Shown: positions 708 through 64,000 of the stretch, piece by piece
Layout of the letters: each line of letters starts with the position of its first letter
Position numbering within the stretch: position 1 is the stretch's first letter
Origin: Octopus bimaculoides
Taxonomy: Eukaryota
Assembly: GCF_001194135.2 (NCBI RefSeq)
Contig: NC_068993.1
Location: 9,520,181-9,584,180, forward strand
DNA: 64,000 bases
Reading direction: 5' to 3'
Translations under genes and position numbers: made by a program
The notes under the pieces: model-generated
Told to the model about the DNA's origin: nothing
Database searches by the model: none
What the model saw: only the letters and a program-made list of their open reading frames with translations

Positions 708-793
708 TTGTGAGAATTGACTTCAACAGTAGCCACTCGACCATCATCGGTGCCATAAGCAAGGAGACCTTCATATGTGGGGTGCCATCGGAC
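708..793 (-). CDS. GEMIN5: GEMIN5 exon 8 ([28 protein letters not shown])
   Basis: tttcaag acceptor, gttagt donor, phase 0-2; no further exon found in 1-707. Confidence 0.9.
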
Positions 794-3700: not shown

Positions 3701-4780
3701 TTGAATAGCCTGAGGCTATAGAAGACACCTGTCAAAGGTGCCACACAGTGGGAATGAACCTGGAACCATGGCTGGGAAGCAAACTTTTTACCAAACAGTC
3801 ACACAAGACAAGGACACACACAGTGTGGGTGTATACACATATATACAACAAACTTTCTCAGGTTTCAGCCATCATATCTACCCACAAAGCCTCAACCAGC
3901 CCAGAACTACAGTAGAAGGTACCTGCCCAAGGTGTCACTGAGTGGGACTGAACCCAAAACCATGCAACTGGGAAGCAAACTTCTTAACCACTCAGCCATT
4001 AAAATTTACAGCAAGATCTTTTGTCTATTGCTCTACAAGGGACAGGAATAGATGATTAGGATTAATTAAAATGTAGTGCTGGTGCCACACCCATACCAGG
4101 GTCATGAAATGGCACCCGGTGCACTCTGCAAAATGATTGGCATTAGGAAGGATACCCAGCCATACAAACCATGCCAAAACACAAGACTAGAGCCTGGTGC
4201 AGTCTTCTGGCTAGCCAGCTCTTGCCCAGACAACCAAACGGATGTTAAATGATGATGATGATGCAACAGTAAGAAAGTCAAAATCCTACTCACGAATATA
4301 CAGAGGAGACTAAATTGTGAGGATGCTTTCGTGGCCAGTGTAGAGCTACCCACAGCCGCACAGTTTCTGAAGACTTTTCTCGTTTCGTACCAACATTATT
4401 TGGTAGGGACATTGAAGTTAAACAATAGTCTTTCTTAGTACTCCAAATACAGATTTTCTGGTCTTTACTGCCAGAAGCAAATAAGTAGCCAGTCTCTGTG
4501 GTTGGGCAACTCTCAGTATCTGAAAAAGAAAAAAAAAAACAANNNNNNNNNNNNNNNNNNNNNNNNNNNNNNNNNNNNNNCACATGTGAATCGTTGGCGA
4601 TTTTCTTCCTCCATCTTCCCTTCTATTGGACTTTCTTCTGTTTCTGAAGAAGAGCGTCTGCTCGAAACGTTAAGCCATCTTTCTTTCCTTCCCTGAACGT
4701 CTGCTAATACTTTACATGTGCCACATCCTTGCATTGTTGTTTTTTTGTGTTTGTAGTTCCTTTGGAGATTTACTATATAC

Positions 4781-4828
<48 letters not shown>

Positions 4829-7503: not shown

Positions 7504-7540
<37 letters not shown>

Positions 7541-10071: not shown

Positions 10072-13000
10072 GAAATTATTGTGTATGGTGCTCAGGTGCA
10101 CTACAGCTCATCAAAGGTGCGTGTACAGTAAATAGAATTATGTACAAAAGTCAGGTAAGTGAACAGTGTATGAGACATGATATACGTGTGCATGCGTATG
10201 GAGGTGGGGGGTATTTCGGGAAATTATAGTAGGGTTTCACACTTAATAAAGTTTACGCCCTTAGTTCAAATTCAGGATTATAGTCATTGCATTTTACTTG
10301 CTACTTATTAGAATGGACATTTATCAAACAAGGCAGAACCTGTTTTGAAGCAAATTGTGGTGTATGTAAACTGCAGTTTCTGTATTGAACATGGCGGGGT
10401 TAATCTCTAGTTTAACACCCGATCACAAAAACGAGAAAAAAAAATAGGTAATAAGTGTGAAACAATGTGTAGTGAACGAATATGAAAAAGAAAAAAAAAG
10501 GTTAAAATGCGCGCTGACGAACGGTGGAGTGGGGGAGCGGACTCGGAAAATACTCGATGTGAATTTTCCGAGTCCTCTCCCCATCCCACCCCGTTCGTCG
10601 GCGTAATTTTTTTATTTTTTTATATTCGTTTACTACACATTATTTTACACCTATTTCACTATTTTCTTTCATTTTTGTGCCCGGGTAGGGGTGGAGCGTG
10701 ATAAGCAGCGTAGGAGTGGCTGTGGTAAGCAGCTTGCTTACGAACCACATGGTTCCGGGTTCAGTCCCACTGCGTGGCACCTTGGGCAAGTGTCTTCTAC
10801 TATAGCCTCGGGCCGACCAGGTTATAGGATGATAGACAAAGTTGGCCTTGTAAGAATTTGAACAGAGGACTTGAAGGGTCATAACTAAATACATTCTTTG
10901 CTCGCGTTCACCCAGGAGGTAGTTTCGCCTTTCAATCTTCCAGAATTGATAAAATAAGGTACTAGTAGGGAAGTCCTCGTACCCTTATAATCAACTCCTC
11001 CACCCACCTTAGTTGTATCTCTTTTAGACATCAAGGTTATCGGGTTTTTATTTGTATTTGTATAAATCGTTTGTATGTTTCTTTACAACAGTTTGATGAG
11101 GTCAATTCAGTGTAGAGACACTGCAGCCCAATTAATACAAAAGACGATTACAAATCAAGCTTATTTACGTTCTGTTAGCTAGTAAAGTACTGCTGTTTAG
11201 ATCTAGTTTTCAAAATCTAGTCACGTAATCCTCTTTTTCATGCTAAGTAGGATAAATGTAAATGCTTATTTCAAATATTGGCATGAGGCCAGTAATTTCA
11301 GAGGAGGAGATAAGTCGATTACATCAACCCCAGTGATCTACTGGTACTTATTTTATTGACCCCAAAAGGATGAAAAGCAAAGTTAATAGCTCCAGAATTT
11401 GAACTCAGAATGTAAAGTTGGACGAAATGCTGCTAAGCATTTTTCCTGTCATGTTAATAATTATGCCAGCTCACTAACTTATGGTTACAAATTTTGGCAC
11501 AAGGCCAGTAGTTTTGGAGCAGGGAGTTCCCAGTGTTCAACTGGTCCTTATTTATCAACCCTGAAAAGATGAAAGGCAAAGCTGACCGTGACAGAATTTG
11601 AACTCAGAACGTAAAGATGGATGAAATACTGCTAAGCACTTTGCCCATCGTGCTAATGATTCTACCAGTTGACGAGCTTGGGATAGATGTAAATATGATA
11701 AAAATTGTTTTTTTTGCTGGCACAAGATCTGAAATACTTTTATTTTGGAATGGCAGCACTGAATTAACCATTAAGCAAAAATAAGTACATGTTTAGGGTA
11801 TCAAGGGAAGCAGGGCACCACAGAAATGGTGTATGGTCTACAGTACAAAAGAAATCACTTTCAGTTTGCTAAAATAATACTCTAAGTGGTTTATATGATC
11901 TGAAATATTATTTCGAAGTCTTCATGGTATCATAGTGAGGATCTGATCAAAGATTTTGTAGTTAAATAAAGTAGGAGAAAACTTTTCAAATATAAATAAA
12001 GTGGAAGTATACAAAAATAAACATTATTTCCCATCTCATGATTAGTTCTGTTTCATTTTGAAAAATAGAAATATATTGTATGGTTTATTATTGATTATCT
12101 TTTGAATTACATATATATGGGAACAGCAAACTCTTTTCAGTGCTTAGAAACTCTATGGGTCTTAATCTGGCCTTGCAGAATAGGGACACTGTGTTTAATT
12201 TTTCTTTTGTGCAAGCTGTCGAGTTTATCCTGAACATGCTGTGCAATGTTGACAGAAACAAATATATTCTAGAATACACTATAACATCTTTCTTCTATTT
12301 TGCAGCAAGCGCCATCAAGTGTTATTCCTGTTCTTCATTCGACGACCTAAATTGTGGAGATGCATTTGACTTCAAGTATGTGAAGGCTTATGCTTGCGCA
12401 GGATCTTGTAAAAAGACAAGAGGATTAACCAAAAGTAATTATGCAAAAATCATTTATCTAAAAACTCTCCTTTCATTTCTGTTTCTTAACCCTTTTGCAT
12501 TCAGATAACTCAACTGTAATACTTATCCATTCACATTTTGAATTGTGCACTTTATCAAAGATAAGAGATTTCAGTGATGTGAAGGTTTATTTTTACAATG
12601 ACATCATAGGGTAGGTCAGATAAAGCCGATTTGAATATAAAACAAGTAGAATATTTGAGCCAGATATGGCTGTTTTAAATGCTAAAAAGTTAATCTTACC
12701 AAATTAATAATGAATAAAAAGAAAATTCTAAATCAGTTACCTTCTAAAAACATAACTTTAATTAACTAACTCACAATCTGTATAATTTTTTTTAAGTGGG
12801 GTCTTTTGTATATTTTAAACACCTGAGACTGCCCCTGGTTCAATCAAATTTTCTATTTTAAAATGATCTACATTAAAATCTTCCATCAGTATTTCATATT
12901 AATTTATGTTCCCTAAACCTGCTTAAAACAAGAACCTATTTTACTAAATTTTTTATCATTTTCAAAACTAATTTAAACAAAAGCAGAGTATTTCAGCACA

Positions 13001-13429
13001 AAAATGGAACTGAAAGTGTTAAATGTAACTAAAACTGTTGAAAATCATTCAATTACTTGTTTCATTTTTTTAATCTGATATTCTGAGATGAGAAATTATT
13101 AGCATTACAATTACTCTATTCTCTCTGTCCCATACCTGACTCCCTCTCTCTCTGCTCTCCACCTCTCACTTGAGTCCCTTTCTCTTTCTGTCTGTCTGTC
13201 TCTCTCTCTACTTCTCATTTTTCTCATTACAGACAATGATGCAGAAATAAACAGAATGTGTTCCTCGCTAGAAAAGGATTCTTGCTACTCTTCACCTTAC
13301 AACGACATTGATGTTACGGCTTGTGTCTGCAACACAGATTACTGCAATTCAGCACCACTAAAACACGTCTCTAGTATCACTTTAAACTTTTGTCTGGCTA
13401 CTCTTACATATCTTCTAATACATCCATGA
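9084..13429 (+). CDS. Ly6/uPAR three-finger protein (quiver/sleepless-like), signal peptide plus probable GPI-anchor signal, 127 aa, 3 exons
   Basis: Join of 9084-9141, 12306-12434, 13233-13429 (phase 1 introns): MGFYTFLGPLFLLIVLVNKSSAIKCYSCSSFDDLNCGDAFDFKYVKAYACAGSCKKTRGLTKNNDAEINRMCSSLEKDSCYSSPYNDIDVTACVCNTDYCNSAPLKHVSSITLNFCLATLTYLLIHP*. Ten domain Cys with CxxC start and CxCxxxxCN end; hydrophobic N- and C-termini. Confidence 0.9.
10417..10686. repeat. Foldback (palindromic) MITE in Ly6-like intron 1
   Basis: ACCCGATCACAAAAA / TTTTTGTGCCCGGGT ends; central GACTCGGAAAAT / ATTTTCCGAGTC. Confidence 0.75.
12306..12434 (+). CDS. Ly6-like exon 2
   Basis: polypyrimidine-gcag acceptor; SAIKCYSC...GSCKKTRGLTK; phase 1-1. 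Confidence 0.9.
12490..12689. mobile_element. piggyBac-type MITE in Ly6-like intron 2
   Basis: TTAA flanks; degenerate TIR CCCTTTTGCATT / AATGCTAAAAAG. Confidence 0.45.
13233..13429 (+). CDS. Ly6-like exon 3 (to stop)
   Basis: ttctcattacag acceptor; ...ACVCNTDYCNSA...LLIHP*. Confidence 0.9.
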
Positions 13430-44594: not shown

Positions 44595-44844
44595 ATGTGT
44601 GGCACGTAAAAAGCACCAACCGATCGTGGCCGTTGCCAGCCTCCTCTGGCCCCTGTGCCAGTGGCACATAAAAGCACCCACTACACTCACGGAGTGGTTG
44701 GCATTAGGAAGGGCACCCAACTGTAGAAACTCTGCCAGATCAGATTGGAGCCTGGTGCAGCCTTCTGGCTTGCCAGTCCTCAGTCAAATCGTCCAACCCA
44801 TGCTAGCATGGAAAACGGACGTTAAACGATGATGATGTTGATGA

Positions 44845-45071: not shown

Positions 45072-45133
45072 ATTATGAATTTAATTCTACACAACCTACA
45101 AATCTCACTGAAGAAACTGATGGAAGAGTCACT
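45072..45133 (+). CDS. Cys-module gene exon ([21 protein letters not shown])
   Basis: ctatttttaag acceptor, gtaagt donor, phase 1-0, two N-x-T sequons. Confidence 0.65.
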
Positions 45134-45427
45134 GTAAGTTCTTTATATATATGTGTTGTGTGTATATATGTATGTATATATATATATATATACGAGTGTG
45201 TGTGTGTTGATAAATTATATGCTGCATTTTTGTGTATATATCTAATGATAAAATAAGGCACGAGTCTAACGATTTAATTAGGGATAACTGCTACAACTAA
45301 TAATATTACTAGAACCATTGTTGATGGAGTCCCTGTGCAGTCACTCTATCAGTGTCTTTTTGCCGAACCACTAAGTTACGGAGACGTAAACACACCAACA
45401 TCGGTTGTTAAGTGATAGTAGGGGGGG

Positions 45428-45458
<31 letters not shown>

Positions 45459-48400
45459 CACGTAAATATATATATATATATATATATACATATATGACGG
45501 GCTTCTTTCAGTTTTCATCTCCCAAATCCACTCACAAGGCTTTGATCAGCCCAAGACTATAACAAAAGACACTTGCCGAAGGTGCCATGCGTTGGGACTG
45601 AACCTGGAACCATGTGGTTAGGAAGCAAGCTTCTTACCACACATCCACACCTGTGACTATAACAACAATAATAATATTTAACTGTTTCAAATTTTAGTGC
45701 AAGGCCAGCAATTTCAGGGGTAGGGGTAAGTCGATTATATCGACCCCAGGACTCAACAGGGACTTGTTTTATTAACCCTTGAAGGGATGAAAAGCAAAGT
45801 CAACCTCGGTGAAATTTGAAGTCAGAAGATAAAGACTGTCGGAATGCTGCGAAGTACTTTACCCAGTGTGCTAATGATCCTGCCAGTTTGCTGCATTCGT
45901 GAAAATAATAACCCTTTATATTATAGGCACAGGGCCTGAAATTTAGTGGGGAGAGGGCTAGTCAATTTCATCGACCCCAGTGTTCATCTGGTATTTATTT
46001 CATCGACCCCCGAAAGGATAAAAGGCAAAGTCGACCGCGGTAGAATTTGAACTCAGAACATAAAGATAGACATAATATTGCTAAGCATTCTGCCCAGAAT
46101 AATAACGGTTTTAAATTTTGGCACAGGGTTAACAGTTTTTGAGGGGAGGGGAGAAGTTGATTACATGGACCACAGTATTTGACTGGTATCAACCCTGAAA
46201 GGATGAAAGGTAAAGTCAACCTTGCCGGAATTTGAACTCAGAACATAAAGACAGACAAAACACCACTAATAATAATAATAATAACAATAATTCTTTGTAG
46301 CATAGGCACAAGGCCTGAAATTTTGGGAGAATGGGCTTAAGTTGATTACATTGACTCCAGTATTAAACCAGTACTTATTTTATTGACCCAGAAAGGACAA
46401 AAGGCAAAGTCAGCCTTAGGGGAGTTTGAACCCAGAGCCTAAAGAGTCGGAAGAAATGCTTCCAAGCATTTTGTCCAAAATGCTAATAATTCTGCAAGCT
46501 TACCACCTTAACAACAACAACAATAATAATAACGATAATGATTGCAACATAAACAACCACAATAGGAAACGCCCATCCACCCCTAAGATAGAAATTTAGT
46601 TGCAGGATGAGGGTAAGAAAGAAAGAAAGAAAGAAAGAAGGCCAACATTTAATGGTTCTGTGCTATATTTCTCTCTAACATAATTAAAGAATTTTTTCTT
46701 TTTTTTATTTCTTTTGCTTAGTTTTTTGTGTTTTTGTTATCTCAATGGCCTTGGTAATGAGTTTCAAAATGGTTTTGATTTAAAAGGCAGGTGATATCCC
46801 ATGATACACTTTGTATTACTTGCTATTTATTGGCTGCGTTCATTGGTGGTGGTGGTAGTGGTGGTGTAGCGGGGTTCAGTGATAATGTATAATGGTAGTT
46901 GGTTAGTGTTGTTGCGGATGGCAGTGGTTGGGGGTGGGTGGCGGTGATGTCGGTTGGGGTGGTGGCTGTAGTTGTGATGATGGCAGTGGTGGTGGTGGTG
47001 GTGGTAGTAGTTGTGGCATTGATGGTAGTAGTAGCGGTGGTGGTGGTGGTGGAGGTGGTATTGGGGGTGGTAGTGGTGGTATGATATTTGCTGGTGGGAT
47101 GTTTTAAAGACATTAAATTAGTGGTGGTAGTGGTCGTCGTCATCATTGTCATCATCATCATCATTGTTGTCGTCATCGTCATGGTAGTAGTGGTTGGGAT
47201 AATGGGGATGGTACTGGTGGTGGTGGTGGTGGTGGTATGATATTTGCTGATGGGATGTGTTAGAAAGATGTTAAACTAATGGTGGTGATGGTGGTGGTAG
47301 TGGTTGGGGACAGTAATGGTGGTGTCGGTAGATGCTCCTTTGGGGTTGTTGGTGATTGTCAGGAAAAAAAATAAAAAGAAAGGCTCTGCTGTATTTATAG
47401 CAGCACTTAGAAACAGTTTGTGAGTTCAAATCCTGCTGATGCCAACTTCGCCTTTCATCTTTACAAAGTTGATAAACTAAAGTACCAGCAAAATACCAGG
47501 GTTAATATAACCCCACCAACCCACTCCACACACACGTACACATACGTATACACAAATACACACATACATACATACACACACGCACATACATACACACATA
47601 TACATACACACATACATACACACACACATACACACACCTACATACACACGCCCATACATACACACACATATACATACATACATACATACATACATACATA
47701 CACATATGCATACACACATCTATACACACACATACACACACATACATTAATACACACACACACATTTACATACACAAATTTCTGCCCTGGTGCCTACGTT
47801 AGTAGTACTTGTGCTGAGAATCATAATTCATGATGATGATGACAATGATGAGCTGATGTGGCATGACAACAATGATGATGATGATGGTGATGATGATGAT
47901 AATGATAATAATGATGATGATGACAACGATGATGATTATGATGATGATGATATCTTGGTTTTGCAGACAGAATCCTCATCTGTAAATGCAAGGAGATCGT
48001 TGCCCAGTATCAGGATCCTGACCAAAATCGAAAGCCCACGAAGGACACATGGTTATTGGCCAAACCAAAGAAACAAGGTGAGACATTTTCCACTGTCATT
48101 CAAAATTCGGGAAGATGATAGGTATTTAAAGTGTGGTTCTTATGTTGCTGTAGTTGTTGTTGATGATGATGATGTGTGTGTATGTGTATATGTATATGTA
48201 TATATATGTGTGTGTGTACATAATTTATATATTAATACTCTTGGCTCCTGTGCAGGTGGCACGTAAAATACACCATTTCGAGCGTGGCCGTTGCCAGTAC
48301 CGCCTGACTGGCATTCGTGCCAATGGCACGTAAAAGCACCCACTACACTCTCAGAGTGGTTGGCGTTAGGAAGGGCATCCAGCTGTAGAAACTCTGCTAA

Positions 48401-51400
48401 ATCAGATTGGAGCCTGGTGCAGCCATCTGGTTCGCCAGTCCTCAGTCAAATCGTCCAACCCATGCTAGCATGGAAAGCGGACGTTAAACGATGATGATGA
48501 TGATGAAGTTATAATAATAATAATGAAATTATTGTATACAGTGTTCAGGTGCACTACAACTTGTCAAAAGTGCGCATAAAGCATATGCAGTATTGTACAA
48601 ATGTCTGGAAAGTGAACAGTGTATGAGTCAGATACATGCTTGCGTATGTATAGAGGGGAGAAAATCAGGTGTAGTGTTGGCGAATCTCAGGAAGCATGGA
48701 AGTTTTGATGCCGACAGTTTGTTCCACACTTCAGCCTACTCTTAGCATGAAAATGTGTTTCCGAATGTCATGGAAGCTGTGCTATTTTCTGACTTTGTAA
48801 CCATGTCCAGACAGGGAAGCTCTCTGATAAAATCCTGTTTTGAATTATGTTAATTATTAATCAATGTTTCAAAAATATTTATTGAATGCTTTTTCTTAGT
48901 ATTTTCTGCCATTTGTTCTCTCTTAATTCTATTTTATTCCAAAATGTCCATATCTGAAATCCACTAATTGTATATTTTATTTTATAGGCATTCATTACTG
49001 GGAATATTCACAGACAAGTACCTCATACTGGAGGACAGTACCCTAGTCGGATACCACAGACAGGAGGGCAATACCCCAGTCGGATACCACACACAGGAGG
49101 GCGGTACCCTGGCCAGATACCATATACTGGACAGTACCCTAGCCAGGTACCACTTGCAAGAGGGCAATACCCAAGACGAGTACCAAACACTGGAAGACAG
49201 TATCCTGTCAGAGTACGAAATAATAGACTTCAATATCCAAGGCTGGTACCAAGTAATAGAGCACAGTTCCCTAGACAAGTCATAAACACTGGACGGCGGT
49301 ACCCTATTAGAGTACCCAACAATAGGGTACCGTATTCCAATTACTACCCAGAGTACCCTACATATAACCAGGGACATGAAAGAAATTCACAAACTTTCAA
49401 TGTTGATCAATCTGGCAAACCTCAATCTGTTTCAGATGTAAGTATTATTTTGTACCCTGGGGGGTTATTTTTTTTTTTGGTTTTTTGTTCCCCCCCACCT
49501 CATAAAGTTTTATTCTTCTTTTATTTTTTGCTTGTTTTGATCATTGGGCTGCAACCATACTAGGGGACAAACTTGAAGAGTTTAGGGGAGCAAATTGACC
49601 CTAGTACTTATATATATATTTTTTTATATCTGGTACTTATTCTTCTATCAGTCACCTTTGTACCTGGGTCGATTTGTTTAACTAAACCCTACCATTTTTT
49701 AAAAGCATTTAAACACATTTTTCACTGATGTTATTACTGTTATTTCTTTATTTTCTGCAAACAAAGAGCACAAAAAAGCTACACGTTTGCATTATGTTAT
49801 ATATACAATAATAATAAAGGACTTTACCGTATATATGTTTACAAACCAAGGACATTATATAAACCTCTTTGACTCAAGTTAGAGAAGGGGTGCGTATTAT
49901 GCACAAGGTTTAGGTTTTTCAGAGGTACAGCCCCCTAAAAATCCCCTGCGTATTATACTCAAGGGCGGACTATACTCAAGGATTTACGGTATTACATTTG
50001 ACAGAGTAATCTAAACCCTAAAGAGTTAATACATGTGCATAAGTGCAATTATTTATCATCTGCTCGCTTAAAAAATTAATATTTGTTTATACCATTTGAG
50101 CGTAATCGTTACCAGCATCGCCCTCTAGCACTTGTGCTGGTGGTACGTTAGAAAATCATTCCACTGAGGTCGTTGCCAGTGCCGCTGGACTGGCTCCCAT
50201 GCAGGTGGCACGTAAAAGACACCTTTTTGAGCATGGCCGTTGCCAGTACCATGTGACTGGCCCTCTTGCTGGTGGCACGTAAAAGCACCCACTACACTCT
50301 CGGAGTGGTTGGCGTTAGTAAGGGCATCCAGTTGTAGAAACTCTGCCAGATCAGATTGGAGCCCGGTGCATCCTTCTGGATTGCCAATCCTCAGTCAAAT
50401 CGTCCAACCCATGCTAGCATGGAAAGCGGACGTTAAACGACGATGATGATGATGAAGGTTTAATTTAGCCTAAACTCTGGATTCACAAGAAACACACTTG
50501 CAAGCTGCCTGAGAAAGGATGCACAGGTATAAAGCATGGATTAGAGAGGAACAAGAAGATATAATAAAGAGAGATAAAAAGGCAACACCAACAGAGACAT
50601 GAGGAAATGAATGTAGACAAACGTTAAGAATATTTAAAGAAAGCTTAACTATGAATGCTAGAAAAATACAAATCATTCTTTCTTTCTTCAATAGGTCCTC
50701 TTAATTTTTTCCGTTCTGTGGAATTTACATTAGTTATGAATTTTGCGTGTTATATTCCTTTGTGTATGTATTGTTTTATTTTGTCTCTTCCTCTGTAGAT
50801 CTGTCCTCAGATTGATGCTCCAATTCTTATCAATGGGGTACTATGTCCTGATGCCATTGACCGTTTTGGCAGCCACTTATGTTACACCTATGAACATTAT
50901 TACAAGTCTTGTTGCGAAAAATGTCATCAAATCAAAAACAAAGCAGAAATAGGTAAGATGAATTAACCACACACACACACACAAACACACACAAATATCT
51001 AAGAAATATCTAAGAATTATACATGTATCTATATAAGTATATACATGTATACAGACACACACACACACACACCAATATCTAAGTATATACATGTATACGC
51101 ACACATGCACACACACACACAAACACTTGGTTATTTATAGACCATGGAGACTGGTTAACTGGTTCTATGAGCCCTCAGACTTGAGACAGTAATGTCTAGG
51201 GAGACGTTGTCACTCAGTCTGCTAGAAATAGCAACCAAATCTTCCTCAAATCACACTCTCCTGTTTCACAAAGGGAATGTCACATTGGGTACTGCTGATA
51301 TGGGGAAACACCTGTTTAAATCATACAGTGTCTTAACTAGAAAACTATTTGATCAGTCAGACAGGACAGAGATGACTAAATAAATGTAACCACACACACA

Positions 51401-53459
51401 CACATACACACACCACAGGGATATTCATATAATACCTAAGTGAGTTTCTTTCTTTGAGTTAGGATGTGAATATGGAGATCACAGTCCCAAGTGTAAAAAC
51501 CTTCCTGCTTACCAATGTTATGAACACTACAACAGAGCGATCTGCTGTGAAGCATGCAAAATTCACAAGAAGAAATTGAACAGTGCAATCCAAAGTAAGT
51601 TAACTTGGCTTGTTTCTACTACTATTATTATTATTATTATTATTATTATTATCATCATTATTATTCAGTAGTCTTGTTTTTATAACGTGCTTTCACTGCA
51701 CTACTGAGCGCAGCTCTGTGTGCTTTGGGTATGTGCTGTGGTTTGTTGTAATGCTCATATATGTACTGTATTGAAAGTGTTTTACATAGGATGTGCGCAG
51801 TGCCCATAAGTGCTATTTTCTGAATGTTATATATATTTGTTAGTTCCGGTGTTTTTGTTATGTATTTGTCTGAATATTTTTTTATCATACCTAAGGCACC
51901 TACTATGATAGGAATTGTTACTGTTTTTAGACACCACATTCGAGTTACCTCTATTTCCAGGTCTTTGTATTTTGAAAATTTCTCCATTTCTTTTAGAGAA
52001 ACGTTGTCATCTGTTGGTATTGATACATCAATTAGAAAGCATTTTTTTTTCTTCATGATCTCTGACAACTATATCTGGCCTATTGGCCTTAATTATTATT
52101 ATTATTATTTTGATGTAAACTCTCAGCTTTTTTTGCTGGGTATGGTGGAAAGCCAGCAGATTAAAGTGACACTTATTTACTGATCATGCTTCAAAAACTC
52201 TTGCAGTTCCAAACAATGAGTTTTTTAATAATAATAAAGCAGTGAGCTGACAGTCATTAGCATGCTGGACGAAATGCTTAGTAGTATTTCACCAGTTGCT
52301 ACATTCGGGGTTCAAATTCCGCCGAGGTCGACTTTGCTTTTCATCCTTTCGGGGTCAATTAAATAAGTACCAGTTATGCACTGGGGTCAATGTAATCGAC
52401 TTAAGCCCTTCCCCCAAATTTGAGGCCTTGTTCCTTCAGTAGAAGGGATTATTATTATTATTATTATTTCATTTATGAACAACAGATTAACATTGGACTA
52501 CAGCAAGTAACCTTAGATGCCAAGTACCTTCCTAAATATCCTAGCTAATATGCTTGATCCTGACTGATCTGGGCTAAACTGCTTGATCCAAGCTCACCTG
52601 GAGTTAATTAAAACTCAATAACAGCTATAGCTAGTTGCAATAGTTTATTGTAATTAAATACTTGCCTCAACTACAATTGATGTTGTATATTTCTTTTTTA
52701 GCACCAGGTTGTGAATTTGGTGATATGTCACCTCGCTGTAAATACATTAAGCCTGCCACATGTTACCAACGAGACATTGAAAGGATCTGTTGCGAAACTT
52801 GTCCCAAGTTCAAAAATGAAAACAACAAAGGTCTGTTGAACAAGATTTTCCACTTTGCCATATTTGGCATTTATATACCGGGACACAAATAGGGTTTAAA
52901 ATTTACAACAGCTGCTCTGGTAGAATTTTATTGATGCATTCATAGATTAAATCATAGCATATATACTACAATCTTCAGGTAAAATTTTAAACAGGTGAGA
53001 TAATACCTTGATGATGACAATTTATCCAGCATTTTTGGGGGTAAGTATCCAAAAGATGTTGGTTGGATTCATAATCATCAAGGTATTTATTCTCTCACCT
53101 GTTTGTACCTGTTTAGAAATTTGCCTGAAGATGGTGGATTGTATGCTATGATGTAATTTATGAATACATCTTCATGAAGGGAGTCAGACTTTTGGTAATA
53201 TCTCAAGTGTGATTGTTTACTGGCTGCATACTCAAAACTTACTGCACATTCCATCTGCAAATTATGAATATTTAGATTATTATATAAATCCAAGCTTCCT
53301 GAAACAGCTGTCAAGTTAAGTATTCTTTGTGTTCTGTATTTTTTATGCTCTATGTAAATATATACGAATATATGTGTGTATATATGCATATATATTATAT
53401 ATAAATATGTATATATGTATACAAACATACATATATATATATTATATATATATATATAT

Positions 53460-53493
<34 letters not shown>

Positions 53494-55175
53494 GCATATA
53501 TATTATATATGTATATATACATGTATATATGTATACATACTTATATATATGCATATATATTATATATGTATGTATACATACGTATATATATATANNNNNN
53601 NNNNNNNNNNNNNNNNNNNNNNNNNNNNNNNNNNNNNNNNNNNNNNNNNNNNNNNNNNNNNNNNNNNNNNNNNNNNNNNNNNNNNNNNNNNNNNNNNNNN
53701 NNNNNNNNNNNNNNNNNNNNNNNNNNNNNNNNNNNNNNNNNNNNNNNNNNNNNNNNNNNNNNNNNNNNNNNNNNNNNNNNNNNNNNNNNNNNNNNNNNNN
53801 NNNNNNNNNNNNNNNNNNNNNNNNNNNNNNNNNNNNNNNNNNNNNNNNNNNNNNNNNNNNNNNNNNNNNNNNNNNNNNNNNNNNNNNNNNNNNNNNNNNN
53901 NNNNNNNNNNNNNNNNNNNNNNNNNNNNNNNNNNNNNNNNNNNNNNNNNNNNNNNNNNNNNNNNNNNNNNNNNNNNNNNNNNNNNNNNNNNNNNNNNNNN
54001 NNNNNNNNNNNNNNNNNNNNNNNNNNNNNNNNNNNNNNNNNNNNNNNNNNATTTGAGCCTTCTAACCTGCTAAATAGATTAATATTTATTTCAGAGGATA
54101 GATATAGAAGAAAACAAGAGACATGAAATACAATAAATGCTTTGTACAATATATATATATAATGATAAAATAAATATTTCCATTTTGGTATGTTTCTTAT
54201 TCAATATTACCTAAATTCTAAATTAAGGTGACGAGCTGGCAGAAATGTTAGCACGCCGGGTGAAATGCTTAGCGGTATTTTGTCTGTCTTTACATTCCGA
54301 GTTCAAATTCCGCTGCGGTCGACTTTGCCTTTCATCCTTTCAGGGTCAATAAATTAAGTACCCGTTGTGTACTGAGGTCGATCTTATCGACTGGCACCCT
54401 CCCCCAAAAATTTTGTGCCTTGTGCCTAGAGTAGAAAAAAATATTACCTAAATTCTAACATTTCTGGTGTGTGTGCACACGTGCGCGTGCGTGTGTGTGA
54501 GTGTGTTTGAGTGTGTGCGCACATGTATGTGTGTGTATAGAAACACACACACGGTGTTCACACTAAATTTGACCGTTTACATAAAAGGGAAATAAAACAC
54601 AATATTCCATCCAAAAACAAAAGCATTTTAGAAATGGCCACAGCTTTGAATCTGAAACAATTTAAAGATTAAAGATTTAGATTATGGCTGGGAGACAACC
54701 GATTACTCAAAGGAGCTGTGTCTAGCTTCCACCACAGCCTCAACACCAAATCACTCTGCAAAAATGTTCTGGTCTTTTAGCCTTGGTGTCAACAAGTGGA
54801 CACCCTTTCTAACACCAACTACTTTGCAGAATGTAGAGGGTTTTTTAAGCATGGTTTCTACAGCTGGATGCCCTCTCTAACACCAACCACCTTACAGTGT
54901 GTATTGGGAATTGTGAAAATGTAAGAAGAGTTATTGTAGTAATAAATAACATTGGAAGTTTGACCTTATAGTGTTTCATTTGAGGGCGTGGTGCAATGTA
55001 GAGGCAGCATTGTGGGGTGTGATGGTTCCAAGTTAATGTATTTGTCTGCATGTCTGGTAACAGGAGATCAAAACTTAGAAATGCATGTGTCTTTTGACTC
55101 TCAAACATGCAGTCAGAGAAAGGATACTGTTATAAATACATAAACTCACATAATTATACCTACATACATATACTC

Positions 55176-55213
<38 letters not shown>

Positions 55214-55309
55214 AACATTCGCACATTCATACAAACATAGATGCAAATACACCCTCCTCCTCACAAACACATATGTATATATGCATAATAGTATATGTAG
55301 GTATATGTA

Positions 55310-55340
<31 letters not shown>

Positions 55341-56259
55341 NNNNNNNNNNNNNNNNNNNNNNNNNNNNNNNNNNNNNNNNNNNNNNNNNNNNNNNNNNNN
55401 NNNNNNNNNNNNNNNNNNNNNNNNNNNNNNNNNNNNNNNNNNNNNNNNNNNNNNNNNNNNNNNNNNNNNNNNNNNNNNNNNNNNNNNNNNNNNNNNNNNN
55501 NNNNNNNNNNNNNNNNNNNNNNNNNNNNNNNNNNNNNNNNNNNNNNNNNNNNNNNNNNNNNNNNNNNNNNNNNNNNNNNNNNNNNNNNNNNNNNNNNNNN
55601 NNNNNNNNNNNNNNNNNNNNNNNNNNNNNNNNNNNNNNNNNNNNNNNNNNNNNNNNNNNNNNNNNNNNNNNNNNNNNNNNNNNNNNNNNNNNNNNNNNNN
55701 NNNNNNNNNNNNNNNNNNNNNNNNNNNNNNNNNNNNNNNNNNNNNNNNNNNNNNNNNNNNNNNNNNNNNNNNNNNNNNNNNNNNNNNNNNNNNNNNNNNN
55801 NNNNNNNNNNNNNNNNNNNNNNNNNNNNNNNNNNNNNNNNNNNNNNNNNNNNNNNNNNNNNNNNNNNNNNNNNNNNNNNNNNNNNNNNNNNNNNNNNNNN
55901 NNNNNNNNNNNNNNNNNNNNNNNNNNNNNNNNNNNNNNNNNNNNNNNNNNNNNNNNNNNNNNNNNNNNNNNNNNNNNNNNNNNNNNNNNNNNNNNNNNNN
56001 NNNNNNNNNNNNNNNNNNNNNNNNNNNNNNNNNNNNNNNNNNNNNNNNNNNNNNNNNNNNNNNNNNNNNNNNNNNNNNNNNNNNNNNNNNNNNNNNNNNN
56101 NNNNNNNNNNNNNNNNNNNNNNNNNNNNNNNNNNNNNNNNNNNNNNNNNNNNNNNNNNNNNNNNNNNNNNNNNNNNNNNNNNNNNNNNNNNNNNNNNNNN
56201 NNNNNNNNNNNNNNNNNTATATGTATATATATAAATACATATATGTGTGTGTGTATGTG

Positions 56260-56291
<32 letters not shown>

Positions 56292-56779
56292 GTATGCGTG
56301 AGCATATGTTGTTACCAAATAAAGAATGCTCAATATATGTAATAAATACATGTTTTTGTCTTTTACTCTTTGGAGCTGACTCTTGTTCCATTGAAATGCC
56401 ATCTGAGGACTGTCTGTTATGGCTACATTGGAACAATAGTCAACACCAATAAAAGAATACACATACAGACACACACACACATATGCATACACACACACAC
56501 ATAGATATATATACATGTACACATTCATGCATATGTATGTGTGCGTATGTATATATATATATATATATGCATAAACATATATATACAGACACACATATGC
56601 CTATAGATATATATACATATACATCACACATATATACATACATATGCCTATAGATATACATACATATACACACACATGTATACATATATATATATATGGA
56701 TGTATTTAGGTATACATAAACATATATGTATATATATGTATGTGTGTGAGTTTGTGTGTGTGGACATATGTAATGCGTA

Positions 56780-56837
<58 letters not shown>

Positions 56838-58726
56838 TAGAGTTGTATACATGTATGTACATGTATGTATGAATGGGTGTATGTATGTATGTTATGTATG
56901 AATGTAATGTGCTAATGTTCTCAAAGTGTCTCTAATACCAAACCTATCACTTTCATTATTGTGACACCCCAAATGTCCACATGGGTGGCTCTAAAAGTGA
57001 CATTTCCATTAGTCACCATTTCCTCCTTTTCCACTTCAACACACTCATATTTATTCCTTCTGTCAGTTACCAATTCTCTTTTGGCCATCAGTCTTACTAT
57101 GTTTATTCCAATATGTTTGTTCCTAGAAAATGAAGAAATTGAAGTCAAAATACACAGTAAAGCACACACGCACATATATATATATATATACCCCGCCCCT
57201 ACACACACACACACACACATAAGAAATTATGATACACACAAAATGCAGTCTGTATCATTTGTTCCCTACATATGTTTCACCATTGTGGTTATTTGCAGCC
57301 TCTACATTGGATGTTCTGAATGCAATTGGTTGCTGAAATACAGCAGATCAACAGAAGAATGTTTTATTGCATTATGTTACACATACATACGTACACACAC
57401 ACATACATACATATATGCATACGCACACAGACATACACACATACATACATTCATACATAAATACGGTCTGGGAATCGAAACCTCAATCCTACAACCATGA
57501 TTGCGCTGCCCTAACCACTGGGCTATTGCGCCTCCACCTTCTGCACTTATACTAATGATTCTCAGCCGTTTTTTTCCTATGGACTCCTTTGATTCCTATT
57601 TCACTCAGATGGACTTCCATAGCCACTCGATGTTTAAAAAGTTCCTATTGTATTTTTAGGATTAAATATCATTAAGAATTGTCCAAATAATTGTTAAAAT
57701 ATTTTGTGTATTGTACAAGTATAACGAAAATTTTAACAACAGAATCTCCAAGGGTCATATAAACTCTGCTTGAGAACCATTGACCTAATCTATTTTCTCC
57801 AATCACCTTTTTCCTGTACCTTCAGTTATCTCTCTTCTTGGCCATCCTCCATTTCACACTTCACAAATCTTACTACCTTTCTCTGCATCCTCTCATATCC
57901 ACCATCATACCCTCTCATTATAACCGCTGTCACATCCCCTACATCCCCCTCTTCAACCCTAACCCTAACCCTAACCCTAACCTTACACATCATCCCTTGC
58001 ATATAATCTACAATTGCACAAAACCCAATATTTCACACCTTGCACCTATGTTAGAAACTATCGTTTATCATATGAGATAACACTTTATGTAATCTGTTTA
58101 CTATCATTTTGATGTATCCTTTGCAGCATGTCCTTATGGCGACCAAAGCAGCTACTTGTGTAAAGCAGTCTTACTTGATATAGCACGTTGTTACTCACAC
58201 CAAACAGAGACCATTTGCTGTGACACCTGCAGCAAAGTGAAGAAAACGGAACCTGGTAAGTTATTTATTACTAGCTGACCACATAATAATCACACATACA
58301 AACATTCCCATATTTCCCTTGTACATACAACCCACATATACATCCAAGACTTTGCAGCATAGCAAAACAGACAGGTACAATATGTACTGGGGCCATAAGG
58401 CTGATTTGTTCTACTAAACCCTTCAAAGCAATACCCCAGCATGGCCGCAGTCCAATGGGTGACGCTAATAAAATATAAGAGATAAATAATAAAACCAAAC
58501 ACAAATGACAAAATCAGATAATTTTTTTTCTGGAATTTTTTTTTTTAAATAGTAAAAACAAATTATCTCCCTTTGTTTTACAGGTTGTGCTTATGGCGAC
58601 CATGCTGTAGTCTTCAACAGTCCATATGGAAGTTTGAACTGCGAACAGTTCATCCGTGTCTATACGAACAAGGAATGCAACAACCCAGTCATCAAATCTC
58701 GTTGCTGTGCCACTTGTGGACCCTAA
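45072..58726 (+). CDS. Uncharacterised, probably secreted protein: Ser/Thr linker, nine ~11-aa (Q/R)YP repeats, five 6-Cys PLAC/ShK-like modules; 5' exon(s) not found
   Basis: Phase-consistent GT-AG join of 45072-45133, 47967-48077, 48988-49437, 50799-50952, 51463-51594, 52702-52830, 58127-58255, 58584-58726 (TAA). Modules follow C-x8-17-C-x7-11-C-x8-9-CC-x2-C; four of the five start CxxGD. Further exons could be hidden in N gaps. Confidence 0.85.
46844..47330 (+). repeat. (GGT/GAT)n low-complexity tract with an internal ~55-bp duplication
   Basis: GGTATGATATTTGCTG(G/A)TGGGATG at about 47079 and 47235. Confidence 0.85.
47967..48077 (+). CDS. Cys-module gene exon ([10 protein letters not shown]...YWPNQRNK)
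   Basis: ttttgcag acceptor, gtgaga donor, phase 0-0. Confidence 0.7.
48250..48505 (+). mobile_element. Repeat family D with (GAT)n tail (SINE or LINE 3' end)
   Basis: GGCACGTAAAAGCACCCAC...CCCATGCTAGCATGGAAAGCGGACGTTAAACGATGATGAT. Other copies at about 2522-2715(-), 4080-4262, 44600-44848, 50105-50455, 61060-61260. Confidence 0.8.
48988..49437 (+). CDS. Cys-module gene repeat exon (150 aa, 33-bp unit)
   Basis: ttttatag acceptor, gtaagt donor; open only in the AFITG...QYPSRIP...SVSD frame with matching phases. Confidence 0.85.
50799..50952 (+). CDS. 6-Cys module 1 (ICPQ...KSCCEKC)
   Basis: ctctgtag acceptor, gtaaga donor, phase 0-1. Confidence 0.88.
51463..51594 (+). CDS. 6-Cys module 2 (CEYGD...ICCEAC)
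   Basis: phase 1-1, gtaagt donor. Confidence 0.9.
51666..52093 (-). mobile_element. 5'-truncated R4/Dong-clade non-LTR retrotransposon (RLE domain plus 3' UTR)
   Basis: RPDIVV...CFLIDVSIP...[13 protein letters not shown]...IPIIVGALG...[12 protein letters not shown]; (TAA)n at both junctions. Confidence 0.9.
52702..52830 (+). CDS. 6-Cys module 3 (CEFGD...ICCETC)
   Basis: tttttag acceptor, phase 1-1; alternative in-frame acceptor possible 6 nt downstream. Confidence 0.9.
52933..53170. repeat. Old imperfect palindrome (MITE-like)
   Basis: GATGCATTCATAGATTAAATCATAGCATA...CTTCAGG mirrored at 53080-53170. Confidence 0.7.
54228..54440 (+). mobile_element. SINE family B (representative copy)
   Basis: GAGCTGGCAGAA...GAGTTCAAATTCCGC...CTTTCATCCTTT...GGCCTTGTGCC with an (ATT)n tail. 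Other copies at about 11270-11660(-), 21915-22110, 30932-31270(-), 37590-38030, 45680-46510(-), 52240-52460, 62755-62955(-). Confidence 0.85.
57553..57782 (+). mobile_element. hAT-type MITE
   Basis: AATGATTCTCAG / TTGAGAACCATTG ends; internal similarity to 43030-43215. Confidence 0.55.
58127..58255 (+). CDS. 6-Cys module 4 (CPYGD...ICCDTC)
   Basis: ctttgcag acceptor, gtaagt donor, phase 1-1. Confidence 0.9.
58584..58726 (+). CDS. 6-Cys module 5, terminal exon (CAYGD...RCCATCGP*)
   Basis: ttttacag acceptor, stop TAA at 58724-58726. Confidence 0.9.
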
Positions 58727-60297: not shown

Positions 60298-62982
60298 GTG
60301 TGTATGAAGTGAGAGAGATTAATACAGGTATGTGTATAGATGTGTACCGAGGTTAGTAGAGACACCAATAGTTATATGGTGATTAGCATATTACACTGCT
60401 TGACTCAATCTGATTTGCTGAAAACAAAACAACTTCTGTTTCACAGGTAAAATGCTTGTTGATTTGACAACATGGACATCCTTGATTCGAACCTAGTTGC
60501 AGCAATTGTGTTGTGCTACCATTAAGCAAGGGATTCAACTCTGCTTGTTAAGTGGAACGTTTACTTCACGTTTAAGGTAGTTGTTACCTGGGCTGCATGT
60601 CGTACTTATTCTACTTGCTGCTGTTCATTATAGGAGAAAAGTAAGAGTGATTACCTCTTCATGGTTCAGAGATTACTTTTAGAAAAAAAAGAAAAAAATA
60701 TATAAAACAAAGCAAAAAAAAACAACCTATAGCATCTGACTGACATTATATGCACTAACAATCTATATTAAAATATCTTAATTTCAGAAAACTCTTATCC
60801 ATGAGAATAAAAGCAAATTGTAAAACAATTTATGATAAATAAATGATTAAATTAATTAAAATTTTCCATTCAGATATTGAATTGTATTTTCAGGTTTGTA
60901 ATATCAAAATTAATATTATTTACAGAATGAAGATCAGTGAGAAATAGCAATATCCACATATTTACAGAATATTTTCTTTAAAGTTGGTAAATGGTTGCAG
61001 GAAATTACGAATAAATTACAAAATTTAATATATGCATGTATGATACCAGTGCCACATAAAAAGCAGCTGCCCTGGGGTCGTGTCAAAAGCACCCATGCCA
61101 GTGTCATGCATAAACCAACCGAGTTGGTGCCATGTAAAAAGTACCCAGTACACTCTGTAAAACAGTTGGCATTAAGAAGGATGTCCAGCCATAGAAACAA
61201 TGCCAAGACAGAAACTTGGAGCCTGGTGCAGCCCTCCAACTGGCCAGCTCCTGTGAAACTTGCAAATAAGCATTGGTAGATTTTACAGGAAAGAATATAT
61301 ATGAATGTTTATGGGTGTTCACAGTTATCCACTCCCAGCTTGTTGTCTCTCTGCATTACAGACCAATCATTTTGGATAACATTGATACCATGAAGATAAT
61401 GGTAATAAATGCCAGTTTTGGCATGCATATGCTAATTCTTATATGCCAGTTTTGGCATATTAAGAACTGAACATTTAAAAATTTAAGTATGTCAGGAATC
61501 AGGAAATAGTTACAGAAAGAAGACAAATGAATAATTACTAAAAGAAGCAAAAAAATTTTTAAATATATAAATTTGGTGATTCCTAACTGAAGCCTAAGTC
61601 CTCTTATAAAATATGGAGTGGCTGTGTGGTAAGTAGCTTGCTTACCAACCACATGGTTCCCAGTTCAGTCCCACTGCATGGCACCTTGGGCAAGTGTTTT
61701 CTACTATAGCTTCAGGCCAAACAAAGCCTTGTGAGTGGATTTGGTAGACGGAAACTGAAAGAAGCCCGTCGTGTGTGTGTNNNNNNNNNNCCCACCATCA
61801 TTTGACAACCAATGCTGGTGTGTTTACATCCCTGTAACTTAGTGGTTCGGCAATAGGGACAAATTAAATAAGCACTAGGCTTACAAAGAATGAGTCCTGA
61901 GGTCGATTTTTTCGACTAAAGGCGGTGGTCCAGCATGGCTGCAGTCAAATGACTGAAACCAGTAAAAGAGTTCCATGCATTTCTATCACTGCATTTGGTT
62001 GTATGAGTTTGATTTATTTTGGTTTTGTAACAATGGGCAGCTTTTCAAAATTAAGTTTGTGTGTGAGTGTGCATGTGTGCGTGTGTTTGCATGTGTGTGT
62101 GTGTATGTGCATGTGTGTGTGTGTGTGTGAAACATGAACCGTTTTAAGACAAGACAAATATTCAACACTGCAGAGGATGCCATGTGACCAAGAAGCATCT
62201 TATTTGGTGGAGGATGGTGGGAGAATGAGTGAGAGAGATATGAGGGAGAGAGAGAGAGAGAGATAAGAGAAGCAGAGGAGAGAGGGAAAGGGAAAGAAAG
62301 AGGAAAAAGGTGAGAAAGAGAGGGAGGGAGCATGAGAGAGGGGAGAAAGAGAGAAAGGGGGACAGAGAGGAGAAAGAGGAATATAGGAAGAGAGAAGGAA
62401 AGGAGAGAAAGTGAGAAAGAGAGAAAAGGCAGAGAGAGAGAGAGAGAGAGGGAGGGAGACAGAAATAATAAAGGAAGAGGGAGAAAAAGAAGGAAAAGGA
62501 GATAAAGGGAAAGGGAGAAAGAGAAAGATGAAAAGAGAGTGGGGAGATAAAGGAAGAGGGAGGGGGAGAGAAAGAGAGAGGACAAGAAAGAAGATTGAAG
62601 GCAGCGGTGGATTAGGTTACGCAGTAATAATGGAGAAAATAATGAGAGAAACTATGGACATTTTGCATCGGTAGTTTGAGAGAAAGCTGGCATTTAGAGT
62701 GGGCATAAAGGTCAGCGTGTGAGGAAGGAGTGGTGTAAAGTAGCAATGATAATCCTTTCCACTAATGGCACAAGGCCTGAAATTTGGGGGAAGAGGGCCA
62801 GGCGATTAGATCGACCCCAGTATGCAACTGGTACTTAGTTTATCAAAGGATGAAAGGCAAAGTCGACCTCAGCAGAATTTGAACTCAGAACGTAGTGATG
62901 AGCGAAACACCATTAAGCACTTCATCAAGCGTGCTAACGATTTTGCCAGCTAAATAATAATAAAGACTAATAATAATAATAA

Positions 62983-63235
62983 GAAGAAGGAATATATTCA
63001 CAGACACGACAGAGCTGGGACCTATATACACTGGAAGCTATGCCAACACTATGGAATAACAACAGAAAAAAGATGGTATAAACACACGCCAGAAAAGGTC
63101 ACAGAAAACGAGAAAGCAACCATACTCTGGGATATGCCAATACACACAGATAGAGAAATTAAGGCCAATAGACCAGATATAGTTGTCAAAGATCATGAAG
63201 AAAAAAAAATGCTTTCTAATTGATGTATCAATACC
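62983..63235 (+). mobile_element. R4/Dong-clade LINE fragment (post-zinc-knuckle and RLE region)
   Basis: YIHRHDRAGTYIHWKLC...[37 protein letters not shown]; nearly identical to the 51666-52093 copy where they overlap. Confidence 0.9.
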
Positions 63236-63662: not shown

Positions 63663-64000
63663 GAAAACAGTCAGCCACCTTCTATATATGGATGACCTAA
63701 AATTATACGCCAAAAATGACAAAGAGCTGGAAACACTACTACAGACAGTACATGGCTTTACCAAGGAAATGGATATGAAATTCGGATTAGAAAAATGTGC
63801 CAAAGCAACAAGGAAAAGAGGAAAATTAGTTAAAAGTAGCAACATAACATTAGATAAAGCCAATGAAATAAAAGAACTAGACGAAAGCCAACCATACAAA
63901 TATTTAGGAGTCAATGAACTAGATAGGATATAACATACACAAATGAAAGAAAAAAAACAAAGAAAGAGTACTATAGACGAGTTAGATCAATACTAAAAAC
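63663..64000 (+). mobile_element. R4/Dong-clade LINE reverse-transcriptase fragment
   Basis: SHLLYMDDLKLYAK...MKFGLEKCA...YKYLG; premature stop. Confidence 0.9.

Follow-up and report, generated by a model that had tools for sequence, protein, structure and literature searches.

The question raised by this locus is what kind of protein is encoded by a chain of small exons, most of them rich in cysteine, in the genome of Octopus bimaculoides. The window, by which we mean the whole stretch of DNA analysed here, comprises 64,000 nucleotides of contig NC_068993.1 (assembly GCF_001194135.2, forward-strand positions 9,520,181 to 9,584,180), and the gene in question occupies its positions 45072-58726. 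An earlier note, made from the letters of this DNA, had proposed that eight exons splice in phase into an unnamed modular protein, in which a linker bearing an N-x-T sequon and nine repeats of about 11 residues are fused to five modules of the type C..C..C..CC-x2-C. It had suggested a secreted structural, adhesive, salivary or venom protein, possibly lineage-specific. Our analysis suggests that the gene codes, on balance, for a protease-free secreted protein of the extracellular matrix or of a secreted material, which carries a cassette of five disulfide knots and belongs to a conserved family. The statements on the gene, its orthology and its family, taken together, are made with high confidence.

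The gene and its Octopus orthologues

Eight exons on the plus strand, each preceded by AG, splice into a product of 435 amino acids (aa), whose open reading frame (ORF) is open from the first base to the stop codon TAA at 58724-58726. The donors of the seven internal exons read GTAAGT four times and GTGAGA, GTAAGA and GTCTGT once each. All exons were recovered by tblastn with the orthologue from Octopus sinensis at 75-98% identity. The splicing in phase that had been read from the letters is thereby confirmed, and the N-x-T linker, the nine repeats and the five modules were all found where the earlier note had placed them.

The first exon in the window (45072-45133), bounded by an AG acceptor and a GTAAGT donor, is coding exon 2 of the gene and matches residues 31-54 of the O. 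sinensis protein at 75% identity in tblastn. Its opening bases AT finish an Asp codon, after which it codes for 20 aa with two N-glycosylation sequons. The next exon (47967-48077), located by its splice sites and by its match to O. sinensis residues ~52-91, contributes 37 aa of a pro-region-like segment with dibasic sites. It is followed by a large exon (48988-49437), 87% identical to O. sinensis, which holds the cationic Tyr/Pro/Arg repeats and a Tyr-rich spacer linking them to module 1. Each of the other five exons codes for one module. Module 1 (50799-50952) is a variant of 41 aa with a beta-hairpin insert, module 2 (51463-51594) is the canonical 31-residue module, module 3 (52702-52830) also has 31 residues and ends at the donor GTCTGT, module 4 (58127-58255) has 34 residues, and module 5 (58584-58726) is a beta-hairpin variant of 44 aa, which is followed by GP and TAA. 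The exon of module 1 starts in phase 0; those of modules 2-5 start, and those of modules 1-4 end, in phase 1, i.e., the exons of modules 2, 3 and 4 are of phase 1-1.

A search of 5.8 billion proteins with the full window protein returned three relatives. No protein encoded by the window itself was among the proteins returned, and the gene has apparently not been modelled for this assembly; it is already predicted, without a name, in two Octopus annotations. The O. sinensis protein (LOC115218597; P0001, 458 aa, 'uncharacterized protein') was found at 90% identity and 100% coverage, and by this correspondence the stretch 45072-58726 comprises coding exons 2-9 of its O. bimaculoides orthologue. 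The second relative is the counterpart from O. vulgaris (P0002), to which UniRef has given the automatic name 'ShKT domain-containing'. The Octopus orthologues are 90-93% identical to the window protein over the whole spliced ORF. Both begin with MLSYRWWYLLQISLCLIY... and have the linker, the repeats and the five modules in the same order, apart from module 3 in the O. vulgaris model. They differ from the window protein in having one 11-aa repeat fewer, an extra SKS in the second coding exon, and a signal-peptide exon. The N-terminal signal peptide of these full-length orthologues bears out the secreted modular product that had been predicted. In the annotated P0002, module 2 is joined to module 4. 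The loss of module 3 reflects either exon skipping or an annotation miss, and the frame is kept because the exon is of phase 1-1. The third relative is a 314-aa ORF from three RNA-derived Logan contigs, with 45% identity. In the cephalopod-like transcript, whose full form P0165 has a signal peptide, the same five modules are joined at the predicted exon borders.

The O. sinensis protein has 30 extra N-terminal residues (MLSYRWWYLLQISLCLIYAESSTNFTAELK), made up of the signal peptide and ~10 further residues, which bring in a third sequon. A tblastn search with very permissive settings did not find the signal-peptide exon anywhere in the window. Since the O. sinensis gene covers 114 kb, compared with 13.7 kb for the portion in the window, exon 1 most likely lies upstream of the window.

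Two assembly gaps, at 53595-54050 and 55341-56217, lie in the intron between the exons of modules 3 and 4. We built a family profile from 20 relatives and ran it against the whole window, translated in all six frames. Five pieces matched, at profile positions 5-55, 53-97, 97-141, 141-187 and 189-236 without a hole, and nowhere else in the window matched. The module exons have E values between 1e-11 and 1e-18 (8e-18, 1e-16, 3e-15, 2e-11 and 4e-17 for modules 1 to 5); module 2 also matched a single-module profile (A7) at E = 1e-13. Moreover, module 3 is joined straight to module 4 both in the O. sinensis protein and in the cephalopod-like transcript. Because the five exons span the family profile from end to end, nothing appears to be missing from the cassette. 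Both gaps, on these alignments, fall within intron sequence, and no part required by the family is hidden in them; a species-specific extra phase-1 exon inside a gap is at most conceivable. What had been an unannotated stretch of a gappy octopus assembly is now a confirmed gene model.

The five-module cassette and its relatives

We searched 1.84 billion representative proteins with a profile of the cassette; in this search, as in structure prediction, O. sinensis sub-sequences served as stand-ins for the window protein. This gave 174 matches at E <= 1e-3, of which 25 had E <= 1e-30. In ~20 non-redundant proteins the cassette aligns as a whole, in one colinear stretch that always lies at the C-terminus, with at most 26 residues beyond it. 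Apart from cephalopods, these come from the chiton Liolophura, the gastropods Gigantopelta, Haliotis, Lymnaea, Bradybaena and Plakobranchus, the bivalves Dreissena, Mactra, Sinanodonta, Tegillarca and Ostrea, and the brachiopod Lingula. Finding the cassette with its 30 Cys in a chiton, gastropods, bivalves and a brachiopod contradicts the suggestion of a lineage-specific protein, and it is the particular 11-aa repeat that is specific to octopus. With one exception, the named members bear labels such as 'uncharacterized', 'hypothetical' or 'unnamed'; the Plakobranchus protein has the automatic name 'ADAMTS 16'. The sequences thus sampled define a family, undescribed and unnamed, in molluscs and a brachiopod. 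The 'uncharacterized' Octopus protein is thereby placed among at least ~20 non-redundant members, none with a Pfam domain or a published function.

Full-length members of the family share a layout of signal peptide, short (pro-)segment, low-complexity region and C-terminal five-module cassette. The window protein has the modules M1-M5 in colinear order with the 30 invariant Cys at its C-terminus, and the N-terminal layout is found in Octopus as linker, RR sites and repeat array, with the signal peptide seen in the orthologue. The exon plan of Gigantopelta is alike, in that exons for the signal, the pro-region and the low-complexity region are followed by at least four exons that each code for one of the five modules; the tblastn matches listed did not include an exon for module 2. 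As a side observation, the intron before the module 1 exon of Gigantopelta aegis (L005, 11379-12628) contains at least 10 tandem partial copies (CQETGIRLRINGMDCPRAI). They correspond to the first 19 codons of the module 1 exon, are 95-100% identical, and precede the real exon at 12851-13003.

In an alignment of 20 cassette sequences (A5), none of the 30 Cys varies, and every module is marked by a conserved signature of its own. Between two Octopus species, the cassette is 94% identical. AlphaFold2 modelled the cassette from the 20-sequence alignment with a predicted local distance difference test (pLDDT) score of 91.4 and a predicted template modelling (pTM) score of 0.70, with short helices in all modules, to which modules 1 and 5 add a beta hairpin; with a two-sequence alignment, the pLDDT was 35 and no confident model was obtained. 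The cassette is thus predicted, from the deeper alignment, to adopt a confident fold. A Foldseek search with the five-module model gave natrin as the best match in the PDB (E = 4.2) and nothing usable in BFVD. When aligned with the canonical module by hhalign, module 4 reached a probability of 98.6%, module 5 of 97.5%, and module 1 of 87% for its C-terminal half. By these alignments, the canonical module is clearly recognisable in the variants 4 and 5, and module 1 is more divergent. The conservation of the cassette suggests that it is the function-bearing end of the protein.

To which known domain, then, is the module related? We extracted 727 modules from ~180 protein sequences. Their commonest spacing is C-x8-C-x7-C-x8-CC-x2-C, which modules 2 and 3 of the window match, and their consensus is xCEYGDxxxxCxxxxxxxCYxxxxxxxCCxTC. 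All five window modules and all 727 extracted modules end in CC-x2-C. The distance from C1 to C6 is 31 residues, which equals the length of the Pfam PLAC model, and positions 1-31 of the PLAC profile align with residues 28-59 of the Ridgeia protein P0103 (CVDHSVNMCQNILQPHHCYDARNRAICCATC) with all six Cys in register. By eye, this Ridgeia module is like octopus module 2, both reading ...CY-x3-NRAICC-x2-C. Among 100 distant relatives, seven matched PLAC at E <= 0.01, the best at 3.5e-7; further Pfam scans did not locate this best relative and showed sub-threshold matches only. The context also agrees, as the modules of relatives follow reprolysin and ADAMTS_CR_2 domains and the cassette of the family forms the C-terminus.

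For the whole spliced protein, Pfam gave nothing at E <= 1, and no match was above threshold in the window protein, its single modules or the orthologues. Single modules left traces for module 5 alone, namely Crisp at E = 0.038 and PLAC at E = 0.11, the latter with 13.7 bits against a gathering threshold of 26.4 bits (PF08686). The description of the modules as PLAC-like in the earlier note therefore holds for their length and Cys register and fails for formal membership. We call the module PLAC-like in this restricted sense, as its register and context suggest. With the PLAC domain of ADAMTS, ADAMTSL, papilin/lacunin and PACE4/PC5, it shares the six Cys, the CC-x2-C end and the span of 31 residues. 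Unlike PLAC, which stands singly at the C-terminus, it is strung together in tandem arrays of 4 to ~20, and the proteases associated with it lack TSP1 repeats. A signature of C-x-[YFW]-G-D following C1, with CY at C3, is peculiar to the module. Neither the family nor the module has a Pfam model; the protein is one built of PLAC-type extracellular modules and not a new category.

The relation to ShK that had also been proposed did not hold. No match to Pfam ShK (PF01549) was found in the window protein, its modules or ~100 relatives, and the modules end in CC-x2-C where the ShKT pattern is C-x3-C-x2-C, with disulfides C1-C6, C2-C4 and C3-C5. 'ShKT' appears in automatic UniRef names only, those of the O. 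vulgaris orthologue and of an Elysia relative. The ShKT domain and the CRISP cysteine-rich domain (PF08562) are likewise small and helical, with six Cys and similar spacing from C1 to C3. Besides the Crisp trace on module 5 and the structural match to natrin, a third pointer to CRISP, equally non-significant, came from the PDB sequence search: the cassette found nothing significant there, and a profile of 78 modules found CRISP-2 (2cq7) only, at E = 0.5.

The statement of the earlier note that such modules occur on ADAMTS-like proteases proved correct. ADAMTS_CR_2, the disintegrin-like domain of ADAMTS, is carried by 35 of the 100 distant relatives and a reprolysin domain by ~30, and neither a Pfam TSP1 family nor, by motif scan, a TSP1 signature was found in any of them. 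In proteases from molluscs and the annelid Helobdella, arrays of 4-17 modules start directly behind the disintegrin-like domain. That these proteases share the whole M1-M5 cassette was considered and rejected, their arrays being mostly of the generic module 2/3 type. Other relatives are single-pass membrane proteins with ~20 modules (Mactra, Mya) or small secreted proteins with 2-4 modules. On these sequences, the module appears to be the standard ancillary unit of lophotrochozoan M12B proteases without thrombospondin repeats. With the module defined, hundreds of proteins from molluscs, annelids and brachiopods could be annotated better, some of which are mislabelled. Misleading automatic names include 'ADAMTS 16' for the protease-free cassette protein P0024, 'notch homolog 1-like' or 'TNFR-Cys domain-containing' for the membrane proteins P0005/P0170 with ~20 modules, and 'ADAMTS 7-like' for P0029, a protease in which Pfam finds no TSP1 domain.

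Possible functions of the protein

In the window protein, the linker carries two N-x-S/T sequons, NST and NLT, and is followed by a basic segment with RR pairs. The repeat core (49012-49332), delimited by repeat and composition analysis and by Tandem Repeats Finder (TRF), consists of nine tandem units of 11 aa (one has 10 aa) with the pattern P-x-T-G-(G/R)-Q-Y-P-x-R-(I/V). It has an isoelectric point (pI) of 11.9, with 16.8% Arg, 16.8% Pro, 8.4% Tyr and no Asp or Glu, and at the DNA level TRF reports a 33-bp period in 4.8 copies at 49019-49172. There are nine repeats in the window versus eight in O. sinensis, and the insertion or deletion amounts to exactly one 11-aa unit.

At the position of the pro-region exon of the window, relatives have a conserved motif, ...h-x-H-x-L-x-KR-(Q/D/E/N). 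A dibasic site after a hydrophobic/His stretch is found at residues 22-58 in 11 of the 18 family members examined, as in ILHHLFKR|N, KVLRKR|E, HILTKR|E and RRHKR|D. Throughout the family there is a Cys-free low-complexity region of 80-600 residues, rich in Tyr/Gly/Ser/Thr/Arg/Gln/Pro and nearly without Lys (Y 3-13%, G 6-20%, S+T 12-31%, R 5-16%, K 0-2%). In the cephalopod-like P0165, merely a 99-aa linker without repeats stands in place of the array. By this comparison, the 11-mer array is the form taken in the octopus lineage by the low-complexity region, which varies freely in sequence and length across the sampled members and keeps its composition.

We can picture the action of such a protein as follows. 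The N-glycosylated dibasic segment would be a propeptide that is removed by a proprotein convertase, and the disordered, strongly cationic Arg/Tyr/Pro/Gln repeat region would follow it. In a secreted matrix or material, this Tyr/Arg-rich region may serve as a spacer or mediate a multivalent, possibly cross-linkable or glycosylated, self-association. The rigid cassette may dock the protein on an extracellular partner, be it the matrix or the sites used by the module-bearing proteases, and the cassette protein would then relate to the M12B proteases as ADAMTSL and papilin relate to ADAMTS. ADAMTSL and papilin consist of ancillary modules of ADAMTS without its protease, and they organise the matrix or modulate the proteases. 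The logic of a secreted protein made from ancillary modules of proteases, without the catalytic domain, would be common to both. Unlike ADAMTSL and papilin, the octopus protein is built without TSP1, spacer, Kunitz and Ig domains and has a disordered repeat region instead; of the components that define ADAMTSL and papilin, Pfam sees no TSP1, spacer or Cys-rich domain in it.

This mechanism of a matrix component or regulator, drawn by analogy, is put forward tentatively. The same caution applies to the wider idea that an ancient, undescribed family, lophotrochozoan as sampled, is the functional counterpart of ADAMTSL/papilin as a matrix organiser or protease regulator, which is conceivable and somewhat less than probable. 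If it is true, the family would act in tissues or in secreted materials, for instance in cuticle, egg coats, sucker linings, byssus or shell matrix. The PLAC-related module would then replace thrombospondin repeats as the ancillary region of ADAMTS-like proteases, and it would merit a domain family of its own.

Several points weigh against the matrix or secreted-material protein that we favour. The secretion of the O. bimaculoides product rests on its orthologues, since exon 1 was not found in the window. The KR of the pro-region is replaced in Octopus, so that cleavage at this place is uncertain. The PLAC profile stays below its threshold also in the relatives that could be located, with 17-19 bits. 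The homology with the proteases is one of modules and not of the cassette, as follows from the generic module 2/3 type of the protease arrays. A binding role taken over from PLAC-bearing proteins would be an analogy, and the function of PLAC itself is poorly defined. Finally, searches by accessions, LOC identifiers and keywords found no paper on the family, and no functional, expression or localisation record surfaced.

Among the alternatives, an adhesive or cement survives best, although we consider it doubtful. Here the protein would be an egg-stalk cement or a sucker or skin secretion, with the repeat as the working part and the Cys modules cross-linking or stabilising the material. Such a use would agree with the extremely basic, Tyr/Pro-rich repeat core of nine tandem units, with the disordered region rich in Tyr/Gly/Ser/Thr/Arg in every family member, and with a repeat number that varies between Octopus species (9 vs 8), as is typical for material proteins. 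Mussel foot protein 1 and resilin-like repeats also consist of Tyr/Pro-rich tandem units of ~10-11 aa with high pI and predicted disorder. Mussel foot protein 1 is made of decapeptide repeats and works by cation-pi or DOPA-type (3,4-dihydroxyphenylalanine) chemistry. The octopus repeat takes its positive charge from Arg, and it has almost none of the Lys that usually accompanies DOPA in mussel adhesives. There is no sequence similarity to such material proteins, the search with the full window protein having returned orthologues only. Furthermore, the repeat is not conserved even among cephalopods, P0165 having its non-repetitive 99-aa linker instead. Because the cassette is invariant and the repeat is the least conserved part, the selected function would reside in the cassette. 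In the broad sense of a structural, matrix or adhesive protein, the role proposed in the earlier note is plausible.

A venom or salivary toxin of the multi-ShKT type, which blocks ion channels or acts on prey in another way, seems to us unlikely. Its models would be sea-anemone ShK, the cysteine-rich domains of CRISP and the multi-ShK proteins in vampire snail saliva. It would be in keeping with the 'ShKT domain-containing' names of the O. vulgaris orthologue and the Elysia relative, with the weak similarities to CRISP (Pfam Crisp, 2cq7, natrin), and with the precedent of multi-ShKT proteins in gastropod salivary glands, where the Cumia proteins are canonical ShKT (PMC6409789). However, the ShKT and CRISP similarities are all non-significant, Pfam ShK does not match, and CC-x2-C differs from C-x3-C-x2-C. 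One-to-one orthologues of the cassette with all 30 Cys exist in bivalves, a chiton, grazing gastropods and a brachiopod. Because the cassette is kept in filter feeders and grazers, a toxin is argued against as the primary role, whereas a housekeeping extracellular role fits, and the salivary or venom role suggested in the earlier note loses ground accordingly. In addition, the cassette is 94% identical between Octopus species, whereas toxins usually diversify. An ancestral role in venom is improbable; a later recruitment as a toxin within cephalopods is conceivable.

The eight exons could also be the 3' end of a gene for an M12B/ADAMTS-like protease with its catalytic exons upstream, which we regard as very improbable. 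The same type of module follows reprolysin and ADAMTS_CR_2 in many lophotrochozoan proteins, one family member is named 'ADAMTS 16' at its source, and the first coding exon is not in the window. Against this, the Octopus orthologues from two independent annotations and the cephalopod-like transcript code for complete products of 329-458 aa with signal peptides of their own, and the full-length orthologues, which start with the signal peptide, have no reprolysin HExxHxxGxxH domain. About 20 relatives in other phyla and classes are equally free of a protease. The first two bases of the exon at 45072 complete the Asp codon that follows the signal-peptide exon of O. sinensis. The plus strand shows no ORF of reprolysin or disintegrin-like type in the upstream 45 kb, which contain instead a minus-strand WD40 gene and a QVR/Ly6-like gene that is complete. 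The earlier statement that no protease domain is present is upheld by the complete orthologues and by this upstream region.

Hardly any weight can be given to a precursor from which the 11-mers are cut in many copies as small bioactive peptides: a dibasic site that follows a short N-terminal segment is conserved, and RR pairs lie inside the octopus repeat region, but the repeats are not individually flanked by dibasic or Gly-Lys-Arg amidation signals and are not kept among relatives, and a conserved disulfide-rich cassette of 230 aa is atypical for neuropeptide precursors.

A definition of the module would also offer a handle on the remodelling of the extracellular matrix in lophotrochozoans. 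For researchers working on biological materials, a protein that pairs a conserved, putatively binding cassette with a Tyr/Arg repeat free to vary may be of interest as well.

Other features of the window

The window is AT-rich, with many microsatellites and N gaps, and has spliceosomal introns. At its start, positions 1-8845 hold a WD40-repeat gene on the minus strand, with ORF pieces at 8411-8845, 6879-7328 and 5101-5310 and weak Pfam matches of WD40/WDHD1 type. If the cassette gene spans 114 kb as in O. sinensis, the WD40 gene lies inside its first intron. A two-exon gene of the Ly6/uPAR 'Quiver' (QVR) type follows on the plus strand at 12140-13429 (Pfam QVR, E = 1.6e-4). It reads ...AIKCYSCSSFDDLNCGDAF... 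and ...CVCNTDYCNSAP..., ends in a hydrophobic tail like that of glycosylphosphatidylinositol (GPI)-anchored proteins, and has its own stop, not being spliced to the cassette gene. At ~39.3 kb, the string 'SPCSKTCG' was considered as a TSP1 motif. It stands in an isolated ORF and matches neither of the two module profiles, and it was treated as a chance occurrence.

An element of ~260 bp resembling a short interspersed nuclear element (SINE), with a (GAT)n tail, occurs in four copies that are 87-90% identical, at 44599-44844, 48240-48510 and 50191-50457 on the plus strand and at 2511-2718 on the minus strand. Three of the four copies are in introns of the cassette gene, and weaker fragments were seen at 61137-61236, 4112-4218 and 54845-54900. 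Long imperfect trinucleotide arrays, (GGT)n and (GAT)n, at 46840-47330 and 47830-47960 occupy the intron just upstream of the exon at 47967, and the (GAT)n tract gave rise to a spurious extension of a tblastn match into the intron. An interstitial telomere-like (CCCTAA)4 lies at 57957-57980, in the intron ~150 bp upstream of the module 4 exon. Near the end of the window, a retroelement fragment with reverse transcriptase, split by an assembly gap, lies on the plus strand at 62990-63235 and 63663-63930; Pfam RVT_1 matches the second part at E = 3e-9, and the first part has no Pfam match.

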